A stretch of 64,000 nt of DNA from Basidiobolus meristosporus CBS 931.73. Its lineage: Eukaryota > Fungi > Basidiobolomycota. This document shows positions 1 through 13,874 of the stretch, one piece after another (position 1 is the stretch's first letter; each line of letters starts with the position of its first letter). Location: the NCBI GenBank assembly GCA_002104905.1, contig MCFE01000210.1, positions 62,001-126,000 on the forward strand. Direction: 5' to 3'. The notes beneath the pieces were generated by a model. It had not been told where the DNA came from and did not search any database. It saw nothing but the letters and a program-made list of their open reading frames with translations. The translations under genes were made by a program, and so were the position numbers.

Positions 1-1070
1 TAGCACAAAAAGCACAAATCACTTTAGCGAACACTATCTACCAGCATCAACAGCCAAATCGCAATTTTCTGTCAAACTTGGAGTCGTACATGGATTTCTG
101 GAAGCGTCCGCCACAGTTTTCCAGATTGCTTGTACGTTTAATGAGGAGCCAATCACTCCTGCGGTTTCTTATGGTTAACATACAACTAGTTGACTATTAT
201 CTATCTAACAATCTGGTTTCTCTTTCCTTGCCGATTGTGTGGATGAAATATTATATGATGGCAGGAATGCTATATTAAACGCTGGTTTGTTTGGTACGAA
301 GAGCAAAATACAACTCCTGGACACAGTTAATGCTGAAATGTGTAACCGTGGGTGGTAGTACTATTTGGGGATATTAGGAAACACACGAGGAGAGTTGCTG
401 ATAGATTGACTTAATAACCATTCGGTCTCACTATGTGGTTGTGGTATTAAAGTAACACCACGCATGAACTGGAACAAATAAGGTGGCTATATTCCAGTCT
501 CTGCACATCCATAATGTTTGTATTTGCAATTGGATTGATGAACCCTGAGAGCAAATCCCATCGCAGCATTGGGGAATCTATTGACCTTCACTCCCCCTCC
601 CTAGCTGAAGTTAGGCAAAAAATTAGATTGCTTGTTTAAATGTAATTCGCGTTTAAATCCCGCTTTCCATGGAAATGTTTGAACTTGCCACAATTATGTA
701 ACTTGTTTGTGAATAACAATCAACGACCAATCAACGCAATATTTGCTCTAAAATTGATAGCCTGATCTCTTTGTTCTGAAAGGGTGAATTGTGTCGTATT
801 CGACGTATCTATCTCAATTATCAAAATTTACAATGGAACCAGTCATATTCTATTTACATTACTCGATTCTAGTCAACTTTCCTTCCAAATGGATACATTT
901 CTTATATATACCCAAACGCCGTGACGAGGCCCGGTGTTTTTTTCTTCTTTAGAGCAAGAACCATAACTCGTTTAACCCAATCACTTGTGTGAGTCATTAA
1001 TTATCCCTAAAGCCATACTTAATCTACTTTAACCACAGCGTGTAAAACAGTGCTGCAAAGGCTTGAACTG

Positions 1071-3687
1071 ATGGAAGTTGATACTGATATTGCGTACAGC
1101 CAGAGACCCACCTACTGCGAAGGGTTCCCAAAGCAATTTTCTGCTCCCTCGGACAGTTCTTCAGAACCAGAGCTCATCTCCTGTTCATCCAGCTATCGCT
1201 TATCCAACAATTCGAGCCTGGGGCCCAGAACTCCAGATAGTGATAGGAGGCCTGACATATGGGGGTATGCGACTGAAGAAGAGTTTGCGCAAGCTATGCG
1301 CTTCTCCCCGCCAAAATTCGATAAAAACGGGGAACTAGGAATTGAACGAAGTTTTGACAAACTTTCCTTTTCTATCGGTCGTAACGCAACTCGCCCCTCT
1401 GATGGTGATGACATATTCTCTTGTCCTACCTCAGATAACATCGATCTATCTGATCCATTTGAAAGCGAGGAAGAAATCTTGGCTCAGACATGTCTAACTA
1501 GAGAACAAAAATGCCAAAAACTAACGCATATTTTAAGGCGAGCATCGTCTAACGGGGATTCGAAAAGAGTGAGCAAATTGCTAGAAATCGCCAAGGACTA
1601 CGTCGATATCAATGGTCAGGATGAGGATGGCACTACACCGCTCATCCATTCGGCGTGCTGGGGTTATCTAGAGGTAGCATATGCTCTTCTTGAAGCAGGC
1701 GCTGACCCTGATGCACAAGATAAGTGTATGTATACCAGCTCTAGTTGGACGCGGTCATAATAGATGTTAGTGCTAATCCCTCTTGAATGAATATAGCGGG
1801 TTGGACTGCGTTGATGTGGGCAACAAACAACCATCATGATGGTATTGTTGCTACGTTGGTAGACCATGGTGCTTCGACCGCCTCCAAATCGACCAAAGGG
1901 CGTACGGTTCTAGACTTCGCGAACCGCGGCTCAAATAGCGACACTTTCCAGAGTCAAAGGATCTTGGAAATTCTGACGGATCCTCGTGACGGCTCCAGTA
2001 GCTCAGGGAGCAATCGCGAGAGCGGCTACTACTCTAACCCTCGAGCAGACCTCGAGGACGTCATGTCCGAAAGCGACATCTTGTTTAGAATGGCACTGGA
2101 TCGAGCCAAAGAGAACGATGGCAATACGTCCGATTTTAAATTTAGCGATTATGGCGTATGGTTTCCCGTGCTCTCACATCGTTATCCGTTGACGAAGCAA
2201 ACTAACCTATCTTTTCTTGCAGGATTTCGAAGATGAAACCGAATTTTCGTGGGATAACATCCAGCCCGACCAGATGTTTGTTTTTACTCACGACAACCTA
2301 GACTTTTTGTTGGACAAAATCATCACCGATATGAAGCCGCATTATTCCCGTGAATACAAATTCCTCCCCGCGAACATCCTTTTCTTGGCCGCCCGCTATG
2401 GCGTCTGTTTAGGGGGATTGGATCTGCTAGAGGAGTTGATGAGCAAGTCATTTGAGAAAGTATTGGAGACAGTCAAGGTACACCATTGCATAGCGTGTCG
2501 AGCTGGGATAGCGTTGTATTAAAAGGACTTTCTAGCAATACTGTCAGGACATGTCGTATCTAGCATTTTGGTTATCCAACTGCACCCTGCTGCTGCATTA
2601 CTTAAAGAGAGATACTAATTTGGTTACCGCGACTGTCGAATTTCAGCTGGCACTTTCCGAACTAATCCACGAACTCTATCAAAGATTTGTTCGCAATGTT
2701 ACTCAGCGAATTGAAGAGCTGCTGGAGCCTGCTATGCTAGCCCATGATGCTTTGCCGGGGATGGACGACATCAAGTTTGTTGGTGAGAAAAGAAACTTCT
2801 TGTTCCAAGGAAAGAAAACCTTTACTCCACCACCTTCTCCTCGTACCAACAGGCTCACAATTCGTCGAAAAACCCGGTTTTCGTCTCCTCGCGGTACCCC
2901 ACCTCGTAGCAAGCCCACCACCCCCAAAACAATCACCTCCATACTTTCCTCCACGCTGATTGTACTGCAGTCATACGAAGTTCACCCGACAATCATCCAT
3001 TATGTGCTGAATCAAATATTCTACTACATGTCCGCCGAAATGTTTAATCGGATCATCATCACCAAAGAATATTGCTGCAGAGTGAAAGCGATGCAAATCC
3101 GTATGAACGTCTCCACGGTCGAGGAGTGGGTGCACACCAACCGCCTACCCCAGGTTTTAGTTCAGCATTTTCAGCCGATGACTCAGCTTCTTCAATTTCT
3201 CCAATGCCTCTCAGGCCTTTCGGAACTCACCGAGCTTCTGGTCACGATCAAGGAACTGCCTGCGTTGAACCTCCTTCAACTATATCGACTCGTCAGCAAC
3301 TACCGCTACGAAGTTGGAGAGAAGCAGCTTCCAGAGGAGATTAGCCAGTATTTGGAACAGGTGGCCAGAGATACTTGCGATCTGCAAGCACGCTCTTCCA
3401 TCGAGGCCGAACAAGATGGCCATCGAACACCAAAAGTTCGAGAAGAGGTGATCGATACTTTACCCACGCATGAGCCTGGACGCGCCGGATCGAGTCTATC
3501 GTCAGGAGATATGGAGGAGCTGATGGATCCAATGCATCTGCTTCCGTTCGCTATACCAACCAGCACCGAAATGCTGAGTGGCTGGGGCAAATGTGATAAA
3601 GAATACGTCCCCTATTTACCCGATGCATATCTCGAAGAGCTAGACAATGAATTACGAGTCAGATCTGAGCATTCCTTCTTCGACTAG
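1071..3687 (+). CDS. Ankyrin-repeat + DIL (dilute) domain protein, 4 exons
   Basis: ATG at 1071. Ankyrin repeats (DINGQDEDGTTPLIHSACWG; GWTALMWATNNH). C-terminal DIL-like domain (YLAFWLSN...IQMRMNVSTVEEW...LLQFLQ). GT-AG introns near 1726-1796, 2150-2222 and 2479-2538 join the ORFs. Confidence 0.85.
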
Positions 3688-4059: not shown

Positions 4060-6072
4060 TTAACTGTTAATAGTGCCGCTATGTGTAAAAGCCCGCTTTA
4101 AACCTGGGAACATCCAGCTGTCACCAGTGTCAACAAGCCCACTTCCGGTTACCTCCAAGTCAATTTTCAGGTATTTACGATCTTCGGGGCCTGCCAGCCA
4201 AGGTGGAGGGAAGACACCACCGAGAGGCGAAAGTAGCGATATACGAGGCCGTTGATTCGGTGCTTTTGGATTTGTTTCGTTGTGTTTGGTGAAGAAGTGC
4301 TGCATATTAGCACAGTACAGATAGGCGTGATCAAAGAAGGGTGGAAGAACATTCTGCCCCTGCTTCTTGAAGGATGTCACCTCCATAGACATTTGGTCTG
4401 TGGTTTCCATCACATCGGTCTCTGCCTCGGATTCTTTGTTGTCATAAGTCTGTCCACTGCTCAACCACGAATGCATTGCTCTTGTCGCCTCTTCGCCAGA
4501 GGCGCTTCTTGGAAGCTTGGTTTCATTCATATGACATTTCGGGTTAGCATTATCAATGTCAGATCGCTTGACAATTTTCGTGTCACGGTCACTTTCAACA
4601 CTAGCTACACGAGGGGCGGCGGCATTGACGTGCGGAGACGGTGTGAATAGATTGGCTCCCATAGTGGCACGGCCTCCGTAGCTGCCGCCAATAGTCGACT
4701 GGTAGTTTGTCAGAGGCAGCGAGAAAAGTGCGAAAGAGAAGAACATGATCATCAGGACAACTCCGGTAGTTTTCGGCTTTGACAACTTTTTATCCTCAGG
4801 CTTGATCACATCATCGGTTTCGGTTTCCGCTATAAAATTGCCTTCAAGGTCGATGTCCATGTTTTCAATCTCAATGGCAGTTTCGGTGGATGTACCCTTT
4901 GAAGATGCTTCTTGCCGCTTGTGTGCAGTAGCTTCCTCCAGCATTTTACGTAATCTTTGGCACTCCTCTTGGGCTTGGTCTCTCTCATGAGCTACTGCTT
5001 TCATTTGATCTTCCATCTCTTGAACCTTGATTTTCAGATCATCATTCTCTTGCACTAGCGTCTCATTGGTGGTTTCCAGGTTTGCCATGTGCTCTCTCTT
5101 CCGCTTACGAGATAACAGCGCAGCGGCTCTATTCTTGATCAGGCGTTCTTGACGTTTACTCAGTGCCGCCGCTGCTGCTGCCTCATTGTTGGGCGAACTG
5201 TTGGTGGATGCATAGGCTGGCCGGTTCTCAAGCTTGGGAGAGACCGCCGGTTTGGGACTATCTATTGGAAGATTTTGAAGAGTCGTCTCGGGGGTCTCCT
5301 TTTTAACGGTAACTTCAACATTCACTGGCTTTGGAATCTCTTTATTAGCTTCACTCAAGCCGTGCGGAGAGCTTGTTTGAGAGCCAACAGGTATGAGTGG
5401 CTTAAGTGGAACTAGATTAGCAGTGGATGGTGCAGGACACGGTTCTCTTTTCTTTCTGCCTCTTTTCTTCTTCGGTGGTTCAGGTGTAGGCTGTACAGCT
5501 GGCAGGACTGGTAGGGAAGTGGCGAACAAAGGAATTCCCGGAAAGCCTGGCAGTCCAGCAAGTCCGTGTGGATAAAAAAGCGGAGCTTGGCCGCCCAGTT
5601 TGGGGAGGGGTACACCTTGAAGGAAAGAGATGGGCTGTGGTTGTGTGTTTACCTTCAGGGGCATATCGTCCATGGACATTGCAGTGGTACCAGAGATCTT
5701 ACTTGAAGAGCCTGACGCTCCACTTTCCAAGACACAATCCTCATTTACATATTGCCAATAGTCAACGTCCGGCTCTTCGCGTTTCGGTGAGGTCAGTTCA
5801 GGAGAGTCGCCTTTGCAACTACGTGGTGAACTAGGTTCCTGCATACCGCCGTTATCATCGGAGGAAGAGCTTGACCAAGGAGGGGAGGCACCGCCAGCGA
5901 GGTGCTCTTTGTCCACGCTAGGAACGTTATTCAGAAAGTCCCACAGATTGTCTTCGTTTGCCAGGAGCTTTGGATCGGATAGTGAAGCGTCTGCATCGGC
6001 GAAACAATCTTGATTCAGGAAGGAGAGAACAAGGTCCTCATTCTCCTGGTTTTCTGCAGTAGTGGAGGACAT
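4060..6072 (-). CDS. Membrane-anchored bZIP transcription factor, ATF6/CREB3-like, intronless
   Basis: Basic region KRQERLIKNRAAALLSRKRKREH followed by a leucine zipper, then a hydrophobic segment GVVLMIMFFSFALFSLPL and a C-terminal tail with RPRISLLSP and YLKIDLEV. First ATG at 6072. Confidence 0.85.
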   Translation of the reverse strand: MSSTTAENQENEDLVLSFLNQDCFADADASLSDPKLLANEDNLWDFLNNVPSVDKEHLAGGASPPWSSSSSDDNGGMQEPSSPRSCKGDSPELTSPKREEPDVDYWQYVNEDCVLESGASGSSSKISGTTAMSMDDMPLKVNTQPQPISFLQGVPLPKLGGQAPLFYPHGLAGLPGFPGIPLFATSLPVLPAVQPTPEPPKKKRGRKKREPCPAPSTANLVPLKPLIPVGSQTSSPHGLSEANKEIPKPVNVEVTVKKETPETTLQNLPIDSPKPAVSPKLENRPAYASTNSSPNNEAAAAAALSKRQERLIKNRAAALLSRKRKREHMANLETTNETLVQENDDLKIKVQEMEDQMKAVAHERDQAQEECQRLRKMLEEATAHKRQEASSKGTSTETAIEIENMDIDLEGNFIAETETDDVIKPEDKKLSKPKTTGVVLMIMFFSFALFSLPLTNYQSTIGGSYGGRATMGANLFTPSPHVNAAAPRVASVESDRDTKIVKRSDIDNANPKCHMNETKLPRSASGEEATRAMHSWLSSGQTYDNKESEAETDVMETTDQMSMEVTSFKKQGQNVLPPFFDHAYLYCANMQHFFTKHNETNPKAPNQRPRISLLSPLGGVFPPPWLAGPEDRKYLKIDLEVTGSGLVDTGDSWMFPGLKRAFTHSGTINS

Positions 6073-12305: not shown

Positions 12306-13874
12306 ATGGCTTCATCTCCGGTCCAGACATTGCAGTACACACCGGTGGCCTCCATGATCCCTGAGATGGTGTATCCACCAGTCCCAGGGGAGACCCACGC
12401 TTTCTATGGAGACCATCATAACAAGGGAGTCAAGCTTCCTGACCGCTCCCATCTTAAGCTAAATGACTCTAACCTACCCAATAACAACAACATCGAACTT
12501 CCAAATCAGATACAGAAAGAGATTAACGAACGTCTATACATCGCAGCGGAAACCGGTGATGCTACCGTTATGTCTGAGTTGTTGGAGGCAATGGATGCCG
12601 CTACAAACGGCTCACCTTCAGGGTTGATTAATACCCCCTCCCCCTCCACTGGCCTCACGGCTTTACACTATGCTGCCTCGCGCGGACATCTTACTCTGGT
12701 TCAATTGCTTGTGGATTCTGGCTCTATTGTCGAGCTGCCAGATAGAGAAGGAGAGGTAAGCAGATTTATACTTGACGGCTTTTTTCGTGGCCCACTCATA
12801 AAACATCCGTCTTGAACCGATTCTTTCCAACAGACCGCCCTTCTTAAAGCGGCGTATAATGGCTATTTGAATGTTATCAAGTATCTAGTCGAGCACCAAG
12901 CCGATGTCAACCACAAAGATAACGACGGATGGACTTCTTTGCATAATGCCTGTTCGAGAGGTCAATTAGACGTGGTGCGTTGGCTCATCGAAATCAGTGG
13001 CGCCGATGTCAATATTAGAAGCAAGATGGGTCATACGCCGTTAAGTAAGTTGGGCCTGGTGAAATACGCCATGGGATGGAGATGCTGATGTCACTTTTCA
13101 CTAGTCAATGCCGCCTCCAAGGGGTATCTACACATTGTACGGTATTTGCTTAGAAAAGGCAAGGCGAATCCGCTCATCAAAAACAAGTTTGGTGAGACAG
13201 CATACGATGTGGCGGCGGTGAGTATGGAGGCGCAGGTATGCGAACTGCTGGAGAGAGCAGAGAAGGATTGGTGGAGAGCCCACAGGAAGCCTAGTGTTGG
13301 TAAGCAAGCGTGGGGATATCAAACCGTGTATGACGGCAACTGACGGCCAATTGTGTTAGGTGGACCACCCGTAGTGAAAGAGAAGTATGACATGATCGCC
13401 TCGCACAATACCATTCTTGTAATCCTCCACGAGAACCAGCGGTCCACCTCAAGCTTCCGACTTCGTTTCACGGCGCCCAAGTTCTCGGCAACTGCGCTTT
13501 CAAAATCGGACGTGCGAGGTCCTTGGTCGTTAACCAACGGTGAGCCCAAGACTAAAGAAGATGTTCAACTGCCTACTCCACCTGAATCTTCACAGTCAAC
13601 CTCTGATTCCTGGTTTTGGCTCACCGACTGGCAAGTTGATATCAAGCACCTGCAAGTCGATCCTGAGGAGGGATGGCAATATTCCAGATCGTTTGATTGT
13701 CTAGAAAAGGAGTGGACACCCACGGCGCCTGGTGCTAGTTCAGGCGGAAGCTGGGTCAGAAGAAGAAGGTGGTTCAGAGCAATGAAACGCCAAGTCGACG
13801 TTTCACAGCTAACCCTAAACGAGCCTGAGGACGATGCTTCGATTAACAGTCAGGAAGCCATTGCCACCGCATAG
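12306..13874 (+). CDS. Ankyrin-repeat + dysferlin (DysF/Pex24-like) domain protein, 4 exons
   Basis: Ankyrin repeats (GLTALHYAASRGH; TALLKAAYNG; GWTSLHNACSRG; GHTPL.NAASKG). DysF motifs WFWLTDWQVD, EGWQYSRSF and WVRRRRWFR. GT-AG introns join the ORFs. Confidence 0.85.

Follow-up and report, generated by a model that had tools for sequence, protein, structure and literature searches.

In human ATF6, a membrane-tethered basic leucine zipper (bZIP) factor of the endoplasmic reticulum (ER), the luminal cysteines C467 and C618 control dimerisation and transport, with C618 restraining and C467 promoting transport, and mutation of Y567 blocks movement out of the ER into the Golgi (PMC13266193). The CREB3/OASIS factors are also membrane-tethered bZIPs, cut by S1P and S2P (PMC12732919), and the OASIS signature is NKxSAxxSR with an extended basic domain (PMC4736632). 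Plant bZIP28 and bZIP17 have type II membrane topology, undergo cleavage in the Golgi and serve as functional analogues of ATF6, and a Dictyostelium review treats ATF6 as metazoan with these plant analogues and no amoebozoan orthologue identified (PMC6025073). Jindrich and Degnan (2016) assigned ATF6 together with HAC1 to a single ancestral bZIP group of opisthokonts, to which the bZIP Hac1 belongs, and report an ATF6-specific domain in unicellular holozoans that was undetected in fungal orthologues (PMC4736632). Mucorales have Ire1 plus a separate 149-aa (amino acid) Hac1 candidate with an unconventional intron (PMC10946435). No publication on ATF6 in fungi or in early-diverging fungal taxa was found in the searchable literature. 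The gene considered here lies at 4060..6072 on the minus strand of a 64,000-nucleotide stretch of the Basidiobolus contig MCFE01000210.1 (the window). From comparison with its relatives we consider it fairly probable that this gene represents, in Basidiobolus, a family of ATF6-type bZIPs tethered to the ER membrane that would constitute a second ER-stress branch. Measured against the searchable literature, the conserved luminal domain of the family and its distribution across phyla appear unreported.

The gene is a single-exon coding sequence, complete with stop codon, that encodes 670 aa and is colinear with P0002 of B. ranarum. An open frame on the minus strand spans 6114 to 4060 and runs uninterrupted for 670 aa from an ATG at 6072 to the stop codon at 4060-4062; this ATG is taken as the start because the orthologous proteins from B. 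ranarum and B. meristosporus open with MSS..ENQE.EDL. Residues 1-120 are acidic (25 D/E versus 6 K/R by residue count) and include the acidic-hydrophobic motif EDLVLSFLNQDCF (aa 12-24; 6001..6039, minus strand), an N-terminal motif shared with relatives and a probable activation motif. A basic patch, KKKRGRKKR (aa 201-209; 5446..5472, minus strand), is identical in Basidiobolus, Endogone, Mucorales and Umbelopsis and is a candidate nuclear localisation signal. The bZIP domain (aa 305-358; 4999..5160, minus strand) matches Pfam bZIP_1 (PF00170) with E 1.3e-9 and 38.4 bits, passing the gathering score at a cut-off of 27.6, and also bZIP_2 (PF07716) with E 1e-5, while the bZIP chains of CREB, Pap1 and Jun in the PDB match the same stretch weakly. 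Its basic region, KRQERLIKNRAAALLSRKRKREH, covers aa 306-328 (nt 5089-5157).

A single transmembrane segment, TGVVLMIMFFSFALFSLPLT (aa 436-455; 4708..4767, minus strand), is the sole strongly hydrophobic 19-mer of the protein (Kyte-Doolittle mean 2.14), flanked by KKLSKPK before and LTNY after. It lies 122 residues past the bZIP signature, a spacing that is 60-213 in relatives, including the ATF6-type protein P0197 introduced below. The C-terminal tail of 215 aa carries two N-x-T sequons (N516 and N598) and two cysteines (C513 and C587). A type II orientation is suggested by the basic residues ahead of the segment and by the sequons behind it, and in that orientation N516-E-T and N598-E-T would be candidate sites of N-glycosylation and the further sequons N291 and N336 fall on the cytosolic side. 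The original prediction had described just such an ATF6-like layout, and the open frame, the Pfam matches and the hydrophobicity profile bear it out: an acidic N-terminus, an N-terminal bZIP, one transmembrane segment and a sequon-bearing tail. Its coordinates were all correct to a few bases, and the three motifs that it had singled out, RAMHSWL, RPRISLLSP and YLKIDLEV, are all located in the tail, at aa 531-537, 608-616 and 634-641.

The closest relatives are two hypothetical proteins of the same genus, P0002 of B. ranarum (70% identity, 100% coverage) and P0003 of B. meristosporus (55%). Against the B. ranarum protein, identity is 82% in the N-terminus, 85% in the bZIP and 90% in the membrane segment, compared with 69% over the last 150 luminal residues and 63-64% in the linkers. 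Beyond the genus, a word search returned more than 100 homologues, which belong to Entomophthorales, Kickxellomycotina, Zoopagomycotina, Mortierellomycotina, Mucorales, Umbelopsis, Endogonales and Calcarisporiella. Chytrids (Geranomyces, Spizellomyces) came from the other searches, so that the family spans Zoopagomycota, Mucoromycota and Chytridiomycota. Since the layout and motifs recur in all these homologues, the features of the window protein are not a product of chance.

A profile built from the membrane segment and tail of the fungal members (A1) was scored against 1.84 billion protein representatives and matched 97 of them at E <= 1e-3. Nearly all are assigned to Mucoromycota, Zoopagomycota or Chytridiomycota by look-up or best BLAST match and a few are unplaced; no Dikarya protein, ascomycete or basidiomycete, with the tail was among these matches. 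The tail is found solely behind a bZIP and a transmembrane segment: 146 of the 150 proteins of at least 400 aa that match the luminal profile have a bZIP signature, and the other four (416-494 aa), which are closest to Kickxellomycotina or Mucorales members, are probably incomplete models. The family also extends beyond fungi. A search with a second alignment (A2, described below) returned P0194 of the amoebozoan Echinamoeba exundans (EukProt EP01122), a membrane-tethered bZIP with the motif LFSFGLF, which has relatives in P0195, P0175 and P0202. Tails of this type read ...TYLMCNNVQQITP...LISFLIPP...LLEVTCKVVGV and include a TYLMC block and a G-R-T-L-L site. The protein had been noticed as an ATF6-like factor in a fungus; the fungal assignment stands, and the distribution proves far wider, with three non-Dikarya phyla and Amoebozoa.

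Some proteins resemble the family in part. In P0182 a basidiomycete-type basic region occurs together with the family membrane motif LFSFALFGLP, and a conserved tail is absent. P0203-P0205, from the Agaricomycetes Stereum, Artomyces and Laetiporus, were retrieved through the bZIP only and have another hydrophobic segment and no tail. All four are Dikarya-type bZIPs with the basic region REARLVKNRAAAFLSRQRKRE, and they may be degenerate descendants of the family and possible substrates of the basidiomycete S2P, Stp1. Mucorales in addition encode paralogues (P0109, P0112, P0118, P0052 and P0085) with the same invariant basic region, another membrane segment and a tail of 45-80 aa. One of these, P0109 of M. 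circinelloides, is automatically labelled 'positive regulation of ATF6-mediated unfolded protein response', so annotation pipelines have already noticed the similarity at the level of the bZIP, and that similarity is not new.

Within the family, the basic region is near-invariant. The sequence KRQERLIKNRAAALLSRKRKRE is unchanged in six of seven Zoopagomycota and Mucoromycota lineages sampled, with one substitution in Thamnocephalis; residue 23 is H, Q or Y, and KRQERLIKNRAAALLSRKRKRE(H) hardly changes from phylum to phylum. The N-terminal motif follows the pattern (D/E)-L-hydrophobic-x-S-(F/Y)-(L/I/V)-N-x-D in Basidiobolus, Endogone, Calcarisporiella, Mucorales, Umbelopsis and chytrids, and looser versions occur in Mortierellomycotina (ILSFLTSDF), Entomophthorales (AYVNQD), P0164 (ISSFLNPE) and the amoebozoan proteins (LLQFFSEDF). 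The membrane segment reads TGVVFMIILFSFALFxLP nearly everywhere, with a near-invariant core (L/F)FSF(A/G/S)(L/V)F..(L)P that is common to fungi, the amoebozoan-like proteins and the P0164 group described below. It is more conserved than the tail across phyla, which suggests that the segment has a function of its own or is recognised by some partner.

The tail keeps four collinear blocks whose W, S, P, L, D and V vary little or not at all, with the family consensus N-x-T-D-L...L-x-x-W-I; (D/h)-a-Y-L-Y-(C/S); R-P-x-L-S-L-x-S-P; Y-L-x-I-D-V-E-V-x-G-S-R-V-V. Block 1 of the window protein (aa 513-537; 4462..4536, minus strand) spans C513, the sequon N516-E-T and RAMHSWL (nt 4462-4482) and follows the pattern N-x-T-(D/E)-L...L-x-x-W-(I/L), where W is nearly invariant and the sequon is kept throughout the family as N-x-T-D-L. 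Of the fungi examined, only Basidiobolus has C513, three residues before this N-x-T/W block. Block 2 is D581-H-A-Y584-L-Y-C587 (4312..4332, minus strand), with L and Y nearly invariant and a counterpart D-x-A-Y-(M/V)-F-C in the P0164 group. The second luminal sequon, N598-E-T (4273..4281, minus strand), is followed by block 3, RPRISLLSP (aa 608-616; 4225..4251, minus strand), an instance of R-P-x-L-S-L-x-S-P in which S and P are nearly invariant. Block 4, YLKIDLEVTGSGLV (aa 634-647; 4132..4173, minus strand), includes YLKIDLEV (nt 4150-4173), and its L, D, V and S do not vary among the 43 aligned fungal sequences.

The connection to ATF6 was reached stepwise from the fungal profile. The A1 search extended to P0164 (E 2.1e-10) and P0174 (E 4.4e-5), which with P0191, P0192 and P0193 form a 'QIDCEV' group (the P0164 group) of the same layout as the fungal family. 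Tails in this group read ...DLKYWLDQSL...DVAYMFC...KPKLSLLVP...LQIDCEVLGT, with R-S-L-Q or R-S-I-L after the membrane segment. Alignment A2 was made from the P0164 group, and a search with it returned P0197, whose tail reads GRALL...NHTALRML...FKW...DNFYLISFKDHLLL...PPLLSVIIP...MLQIDCEILNTNIIH. The nearest Atlas clusters of P0197 are 'ATF-6 beta' from Chordata (score 0.96, 212 of 256 features, 41 of 100 matches in that set), and because of these clusters P0197 is taken as an ATF6-type animal protein. Its identity agrees with the human ATF6 alpha sequence, FYVVSFRRDHLLL...RPKMSIVLP...MMQIDCQVMDTRILH, an agreement that serves as a lead and not as a test. Human numbering would put C618 in QIDC and Y567 in FYVV, which fits the published facts on these residues and is again a lead only. 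Block 3 of the family aligns with PPLLSVIIP of P0197, and block 4 aligns with MLQIDCEILNTNII of P0197 and with LQIDCEVLGT of P0164. Block 2 was matched with D-N-F-Y-L-I-S-F of P0197 by eye; the programs placed that stretch elsewhere.

Targeted comparisons were confined to the luminal parts, from which the membrane segment had been cut away. With hmmsearch, a fungal-only luminal profile scores 42.6 bits against the P0174 tail and 35.4 bits against the P0164 tail. Once enlarged by the P0164 group and chytrids, the profile gives the P0197 tail 10.8 bits (E 1.5e-5 in a single comparison), a value reached by none of 3000 shuffles (maximum 7.6), while the reversed P0197 sequence scores -1.3; amoebozoan-like tails score 17-21 bits with it, above every shuffle. 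Comparisons by hhalign yield P = 2.7e-4 between the enlarged profile and P0197, P = 5e-4 for the fungal-only profile against P0197 together with amoebozoan-like tails, and 95.8% probability with E 8e-9 for the fungal-only profile against the combined non-fungal tails. In the reciprocal direction, phmmer from the P0197 tail finds 18 of 146 tails at p <= 1e-3, Mucorales included at E ~2e-3, where 150 shuffles give a mean of 0.63 matches and a maximum of 8, and jackhmmer from the same tail recruits 123 of the 146. The N-x-T...W, RPxLS and IDxEV blocks are collinear in both the hhalign and the hmmsearch alignments.

Homology between the luminal tail and the ATF6 luminal domain is on these comparisons likely, if not proven, and membership of the ATF6 family is graded in the same way because there is one ATF6-type reference and it is linked only through intermediates. 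The original prediction had proposed that the luminal domain is conserved: conservation of the tail holds, and its homology to ATF6 is probable by way of intermediates, while direct detection failed. Its line-up of short tail motifs with human ATF6 fares similarly, in that all four fall within the most conserved blocks and the last two align with blocks of P0197. The profile comparison that it had envisaged is, for the fungal-only profile, positive against the combined non-fungal tails and weak against P0197 alone.

Cleavage signals provide a further point of comparison. In ATF6, a site-1 protease motif (RxxL or RxLL) is expected about 15-25 residues into the lumen, and site-2 proteases require helix-breaking segment ends in both ATF6 and SREBP; work by Ye et al. 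from 2000 is said to have found that Asn and Pro of the ATF6 membrane segment are required for site-2 cleavage. The membrane segment of the window protein closes with ...FALFSLPLTNY, and (S/T/N)-L-P stands at this place in nearly all members, with FNLP in Mortierellomycotina. R468-A-T-M471 (4660..4671, minus strand), 14 residues beyond this segment, is a candidate for luminal cleavage of the site-1 type, and an R-x-hydrophobic motif at such a distance (about 14-20 residues) would be a point of likeness to ATF6. The same column holds RAIM in B. meristosporus, RPLI or RPLL in Endogone and Calcarisporiella, and RLLL or RLLI in Coemansia; outside fungi it holds RSIL, RSLQ or RTLQ in the P0164 group, RTLL or RSIL in amoebozoan-like proteins, and RALL in P0197, 20 residues past its membrane segment. 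The earlier statement that no clear RxxL site exists is strictly correct for Basidiobolus, but only half the picture, as RATM aligns with the RxLL and RxIL sites of relatives. Luminal clipping by an S1P-type enzyme is plausible from this alignment, and clipping by another protease is possible. Basidiomycetes have S2P homologues with Sre1-independent, DTT-related roles (PMC12732919).

Set beside the described systems, the window protein is closest to ATF6 alpha and beta, with which it shares the acidic N-terminus, the bZIP, the single membrane segment 70-120 residues behind the bZIP signature, the sequon-bearing luminal tail and four tail blocks (N-x-T...W; D..Y; RPxLS..P; IDxEV) that are linked statistically to an ATF6-type tail. 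It differs in its basic region (NRAAALLSR, versus N-R-E-(S/A)-A, the type to which NREAASMSR of P0197 belongs), in its post-membrane RATM in place of RxLL, in its N-terminal motif, which is unlike that of P0197, and in the QIDC cysteine (C618 in human), which is L or V in fungi. Nor is the luminal cysteine pair of ATF6 matched, as C587 lies in a different block and the QIDC position is L639. The position of C513, just upstream of the N-x-T/W block, presumably resembles that of human C467, and the tyrosine of the D..Y block (Y584 here) is what we take to be human Y567, mutated in achromatopsia.

The CREB3/OASIS factors (Luman, CREB-H, OASIS, BBF2H7) share the general architecture of a membrane-tethered bZIP, but by comparison with their published description the KNRAAALLSR of the window protein has neither the OASIS signature nor the extended basic domain, and CREB3 tails are not known to carry the four ATF6-type blocks. 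The layout of plant bZIP28/17 is analogous by description, in a different kingdom. The basic regions of P0175 and P0194 resemble those of bZIP17/28, and both proteins share the tail blocks of the family weakly; that ATF6, bZIP17/28 and the fungal families all descend from one ancestral membrane bZIP is speculation. Hac1 is, like the window protein, a bZIP, with a similar NR.AA..SR basic region, and acts as the ER-stress effector in fungi. It is soluble and activated by Ire1-dependent unconventional mRNA splicing, whereas in the window protein the bZIP is followed by a membrane segment and a 215-aa tail; the separate Hac1 candidate of Mucorales implies that the membrane-bZIP family is not Hac1. 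With Sre1 and Stp1 (S2P) the parallel is the proposed release of a membrane-bound factor by proteolysis, although Sre1 is a bHLH-zip hairpin with two membrane segments and is unrelated in sequence. Mucor atf1 and atf2 (PMC6428757) were considered as relatives and rejected, being soluble, Atf1-like and free of any membrane segment.

If the window protein is an ATF6-type factor, it would insert into the ER membrane in type II orientation, so that the activation domain, the basic patch and the bZIP face the cytosol while the lumen receives a glycosylated tail. Retention in the ER would depend on that tail, until folding stress, or else glycosylation or redox status, sets the protein free for transport to the Golgi, where a site-1-type subtilase would cut the luminal side near R468-A-T-M471 and a site-2-type metalloprotease would then cut inside the conserved FSFALFSLP of the membrane segment. 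The resulting N-terminal fragment of about 440-450 aa would enter the nucleus and activate genes through the invariant basic region. Such stress-regulated proteolysis of the fungal protein, which we infer by analogy, would act beside Ire1-Hac1 and not replace it. An ATF6-type ER-stress sensor thus conceived probably predates the split of animals and fungi and survives in early-diverging fungi, to judge from the probable relatedness of the luminal tail to that of animal ATF6. More tentatively, and short of a position we would hold with confidence, an ATF6 arm that couples a luminal sensor to regulated intramembrane proteolysis may already have existed in the ancestor that animals, fungi and Amoebozoa share, may operate beside Ire1-Hac1 in chytrids, Zoopagomycota and Mucoromycota, and may have been lost or degraded in Dikarya.

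Several results weigh against an ATF6-type stress sensor, and there are three other accounts. One is convergence, in which a fungal-lineage bZIP with a Hac1/ATF-type NRAAALLSR region gained an anchor and an unrelated tail, the shared motifs being chance or compositional. The exhaustive search with the fungal tail profile returned no named metazoan ATF6 at E <= 1e-3 among the 1.84 billion proteins, and HMMER gives no direct fungal-metazoan connection of the tails: the fungal-only luminal profile scores 0 bits against the P0197 tail by hmmsearch and only P = 0.031 by hhalign, though with three of four blocks in order. Word searches with P0164 (region 330-595) or with A2 also returned no named metazoan ATF6. 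P0197 is the sole ATF6-type reference and is unnamed, its identity coming from language-model features and its likeness to the human sequence. Significance for the link between tail and ATF6 arises only via intermediate sequences, with each test moderate, and the best single-sequence phmmer value (E 5.9e-4) lies near the shuffle minimum of 8.7e-4 and is matched by about 1 in 150 shuffles. Other approaches to the tail were uninformative: a Pfam scan found no model, only the bZIP and coiled-coil noise; a PDB sequence search with the A1 profile found no match; and an Atlas feature search returned nothing informative (best score 0.78). A match of PF28159 to two homologues was rejected as a weak CEP89 coiled-coil match. 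The tails are also rich in S, T and P, and both AlphaFold (AF2) runs, on 43 and 79 sequences, gave models with a mean pLDDT of about 56 in which the tail is mostly predicted disordered. Confident parts (pLDDT 74-86) are limited to a helix over EEATRAMHSWLSS (about aa 526-538; pLDDT ~74) and the strands RISLLSP and YLKIDLE, those of block 3 (77-84) and block 4 pairing as a hairpin, so that the conserved blocks would be the structured parts of a mostly flexible tail. What makes convergence improbable is the chain of intermediates, which carry QIDCEV and stand 35-43 bits from the fungal profile, together with a P0197 score unreached in 3000 shuffles, 18 reciprocal matches against a shuffle maximum of 8, and an hhalign E of 8e-9 for the combined non-fungal alignment with three of four blocks in order.

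A role for the same ATF6/CREB3-type family outside the unfolded protein response (UPR) has a better chance than convergence, though a clearly smaller one than the stress sensor. Here the protein would serve secretory capacity, membrane lipid composition or development, as CREB3 does in animals, with lipid or Golgi cues read through the membrane segment. This would accord with the conservation of LFSFALFxLP above that of the tail, from the fungal phyla through to the amoebozoan-like proteins, and with the presence in Mucorales of Ire1 and a Hac1 candidate already. It would also accord with the absence of the redox cysteine from the QIDC block, since the position reads IDLEV in Basidiobolus (L639) and mostly IDVEV or IDVQV in other fungi, an observation that counts against an ATF6-like sensor. 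The tail blocks that link the family to an ATF6-type protein are nevertheless conserved too, along with luminal sequons and the tyrosine block. Very unlikely, by comparison, is a bZIP that stays membrane-bound and uncleaved and acts at the inner nuclear membrane, as a decoy or as a dimerisation partner. Basidiobolus has no canonical RxxL or RxLL site, RATM being non-canonical at P2 and P1; a motif scan found no post-membrane R-x-hydrophobic site in the Entomophthorales sampled or in two of four Mucorales, other Mucorales showing R-L-T-V at +6 together with a conserved P-L-I; and in Mortierellomycotina its place is taken by GRALD. Relatives do carry canonical sites, however, and the conserved tail and the helix-breaking S/T/N-L-P at the luminal end of the segment fit a processed precursor.

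Should the ATF6-type reading hold, this mode of signalling would be no animal invention but an ancient property of animals, fungi and Amoebozoa that was lost in yeasts, Aspergillus and Cryptococcus, and the textbook restriction of fungi to Ire1-Hac1 would merely reflect which species were chosen as models. Mucor and other genetically tractable fungi of early-diverging lineages could then serve as simple systems for luminal stress sensing by ATF6, and the residues kept for about a billion years would be pinpointed to the N-x-T...W helix, the D..Y block, RPxLS and IDxEV. A candidate stress pathway would also be at hand in the Mucorales and Basidiobolus pathogens responsible for mucormycosis and basidiobolomycosis. 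The gain would be mainly evolutionary and comparative.

The surroundings of the gene are conserved as well. On the plus strand, a neighbour at 1050-3687 encodes ankyrin repeats, in the open reading frames (ORFs) 1050-1757 and 1787-2233, followed by a DIL domain in ORF 2551-3684 (plus strand, E 3e-29). This Ank+DIL gene is convergent with the bZIP gene, and the same order is found at the B. meristosporus locus L002 with an 811-aa Ank+DIL protein, so the shared convergent neighbour marks the two bZIP loci as orthologous. The annotated B. meristosporus P0003 (625 aa) departs from the window protein past about aa 565 and is missing the last luminal blocks. By tblastn, aa 565-670 are encoded there in another frame just downstream, from 7731, at 72% identity (L002:7683-8045, MCFE01000086.1), from which it follows that the gene model is wrong through a missed short intron or a frame error. 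Conservation in three Basidiobolus genomes argues for a functional gene. No RNA run from the organism was found among public runs; a single run, of uncertain kind, covers part of the stretch. Its contigs are 90-99% identical to the window, have no joints and include a 12-nt in-frame insertion after 4576, inside a variable luminal linker, and they probably come from a sister strain or species. Farther along the window, ORF 12306-12812 (plus strand) carries ankyrin repeats and ORF 13353-13871 (plus strand) weakly matches the C-terminus of the peroxin Pex24p (E 1e-4, under the gathering score); both are probably exons of unannotated genes.

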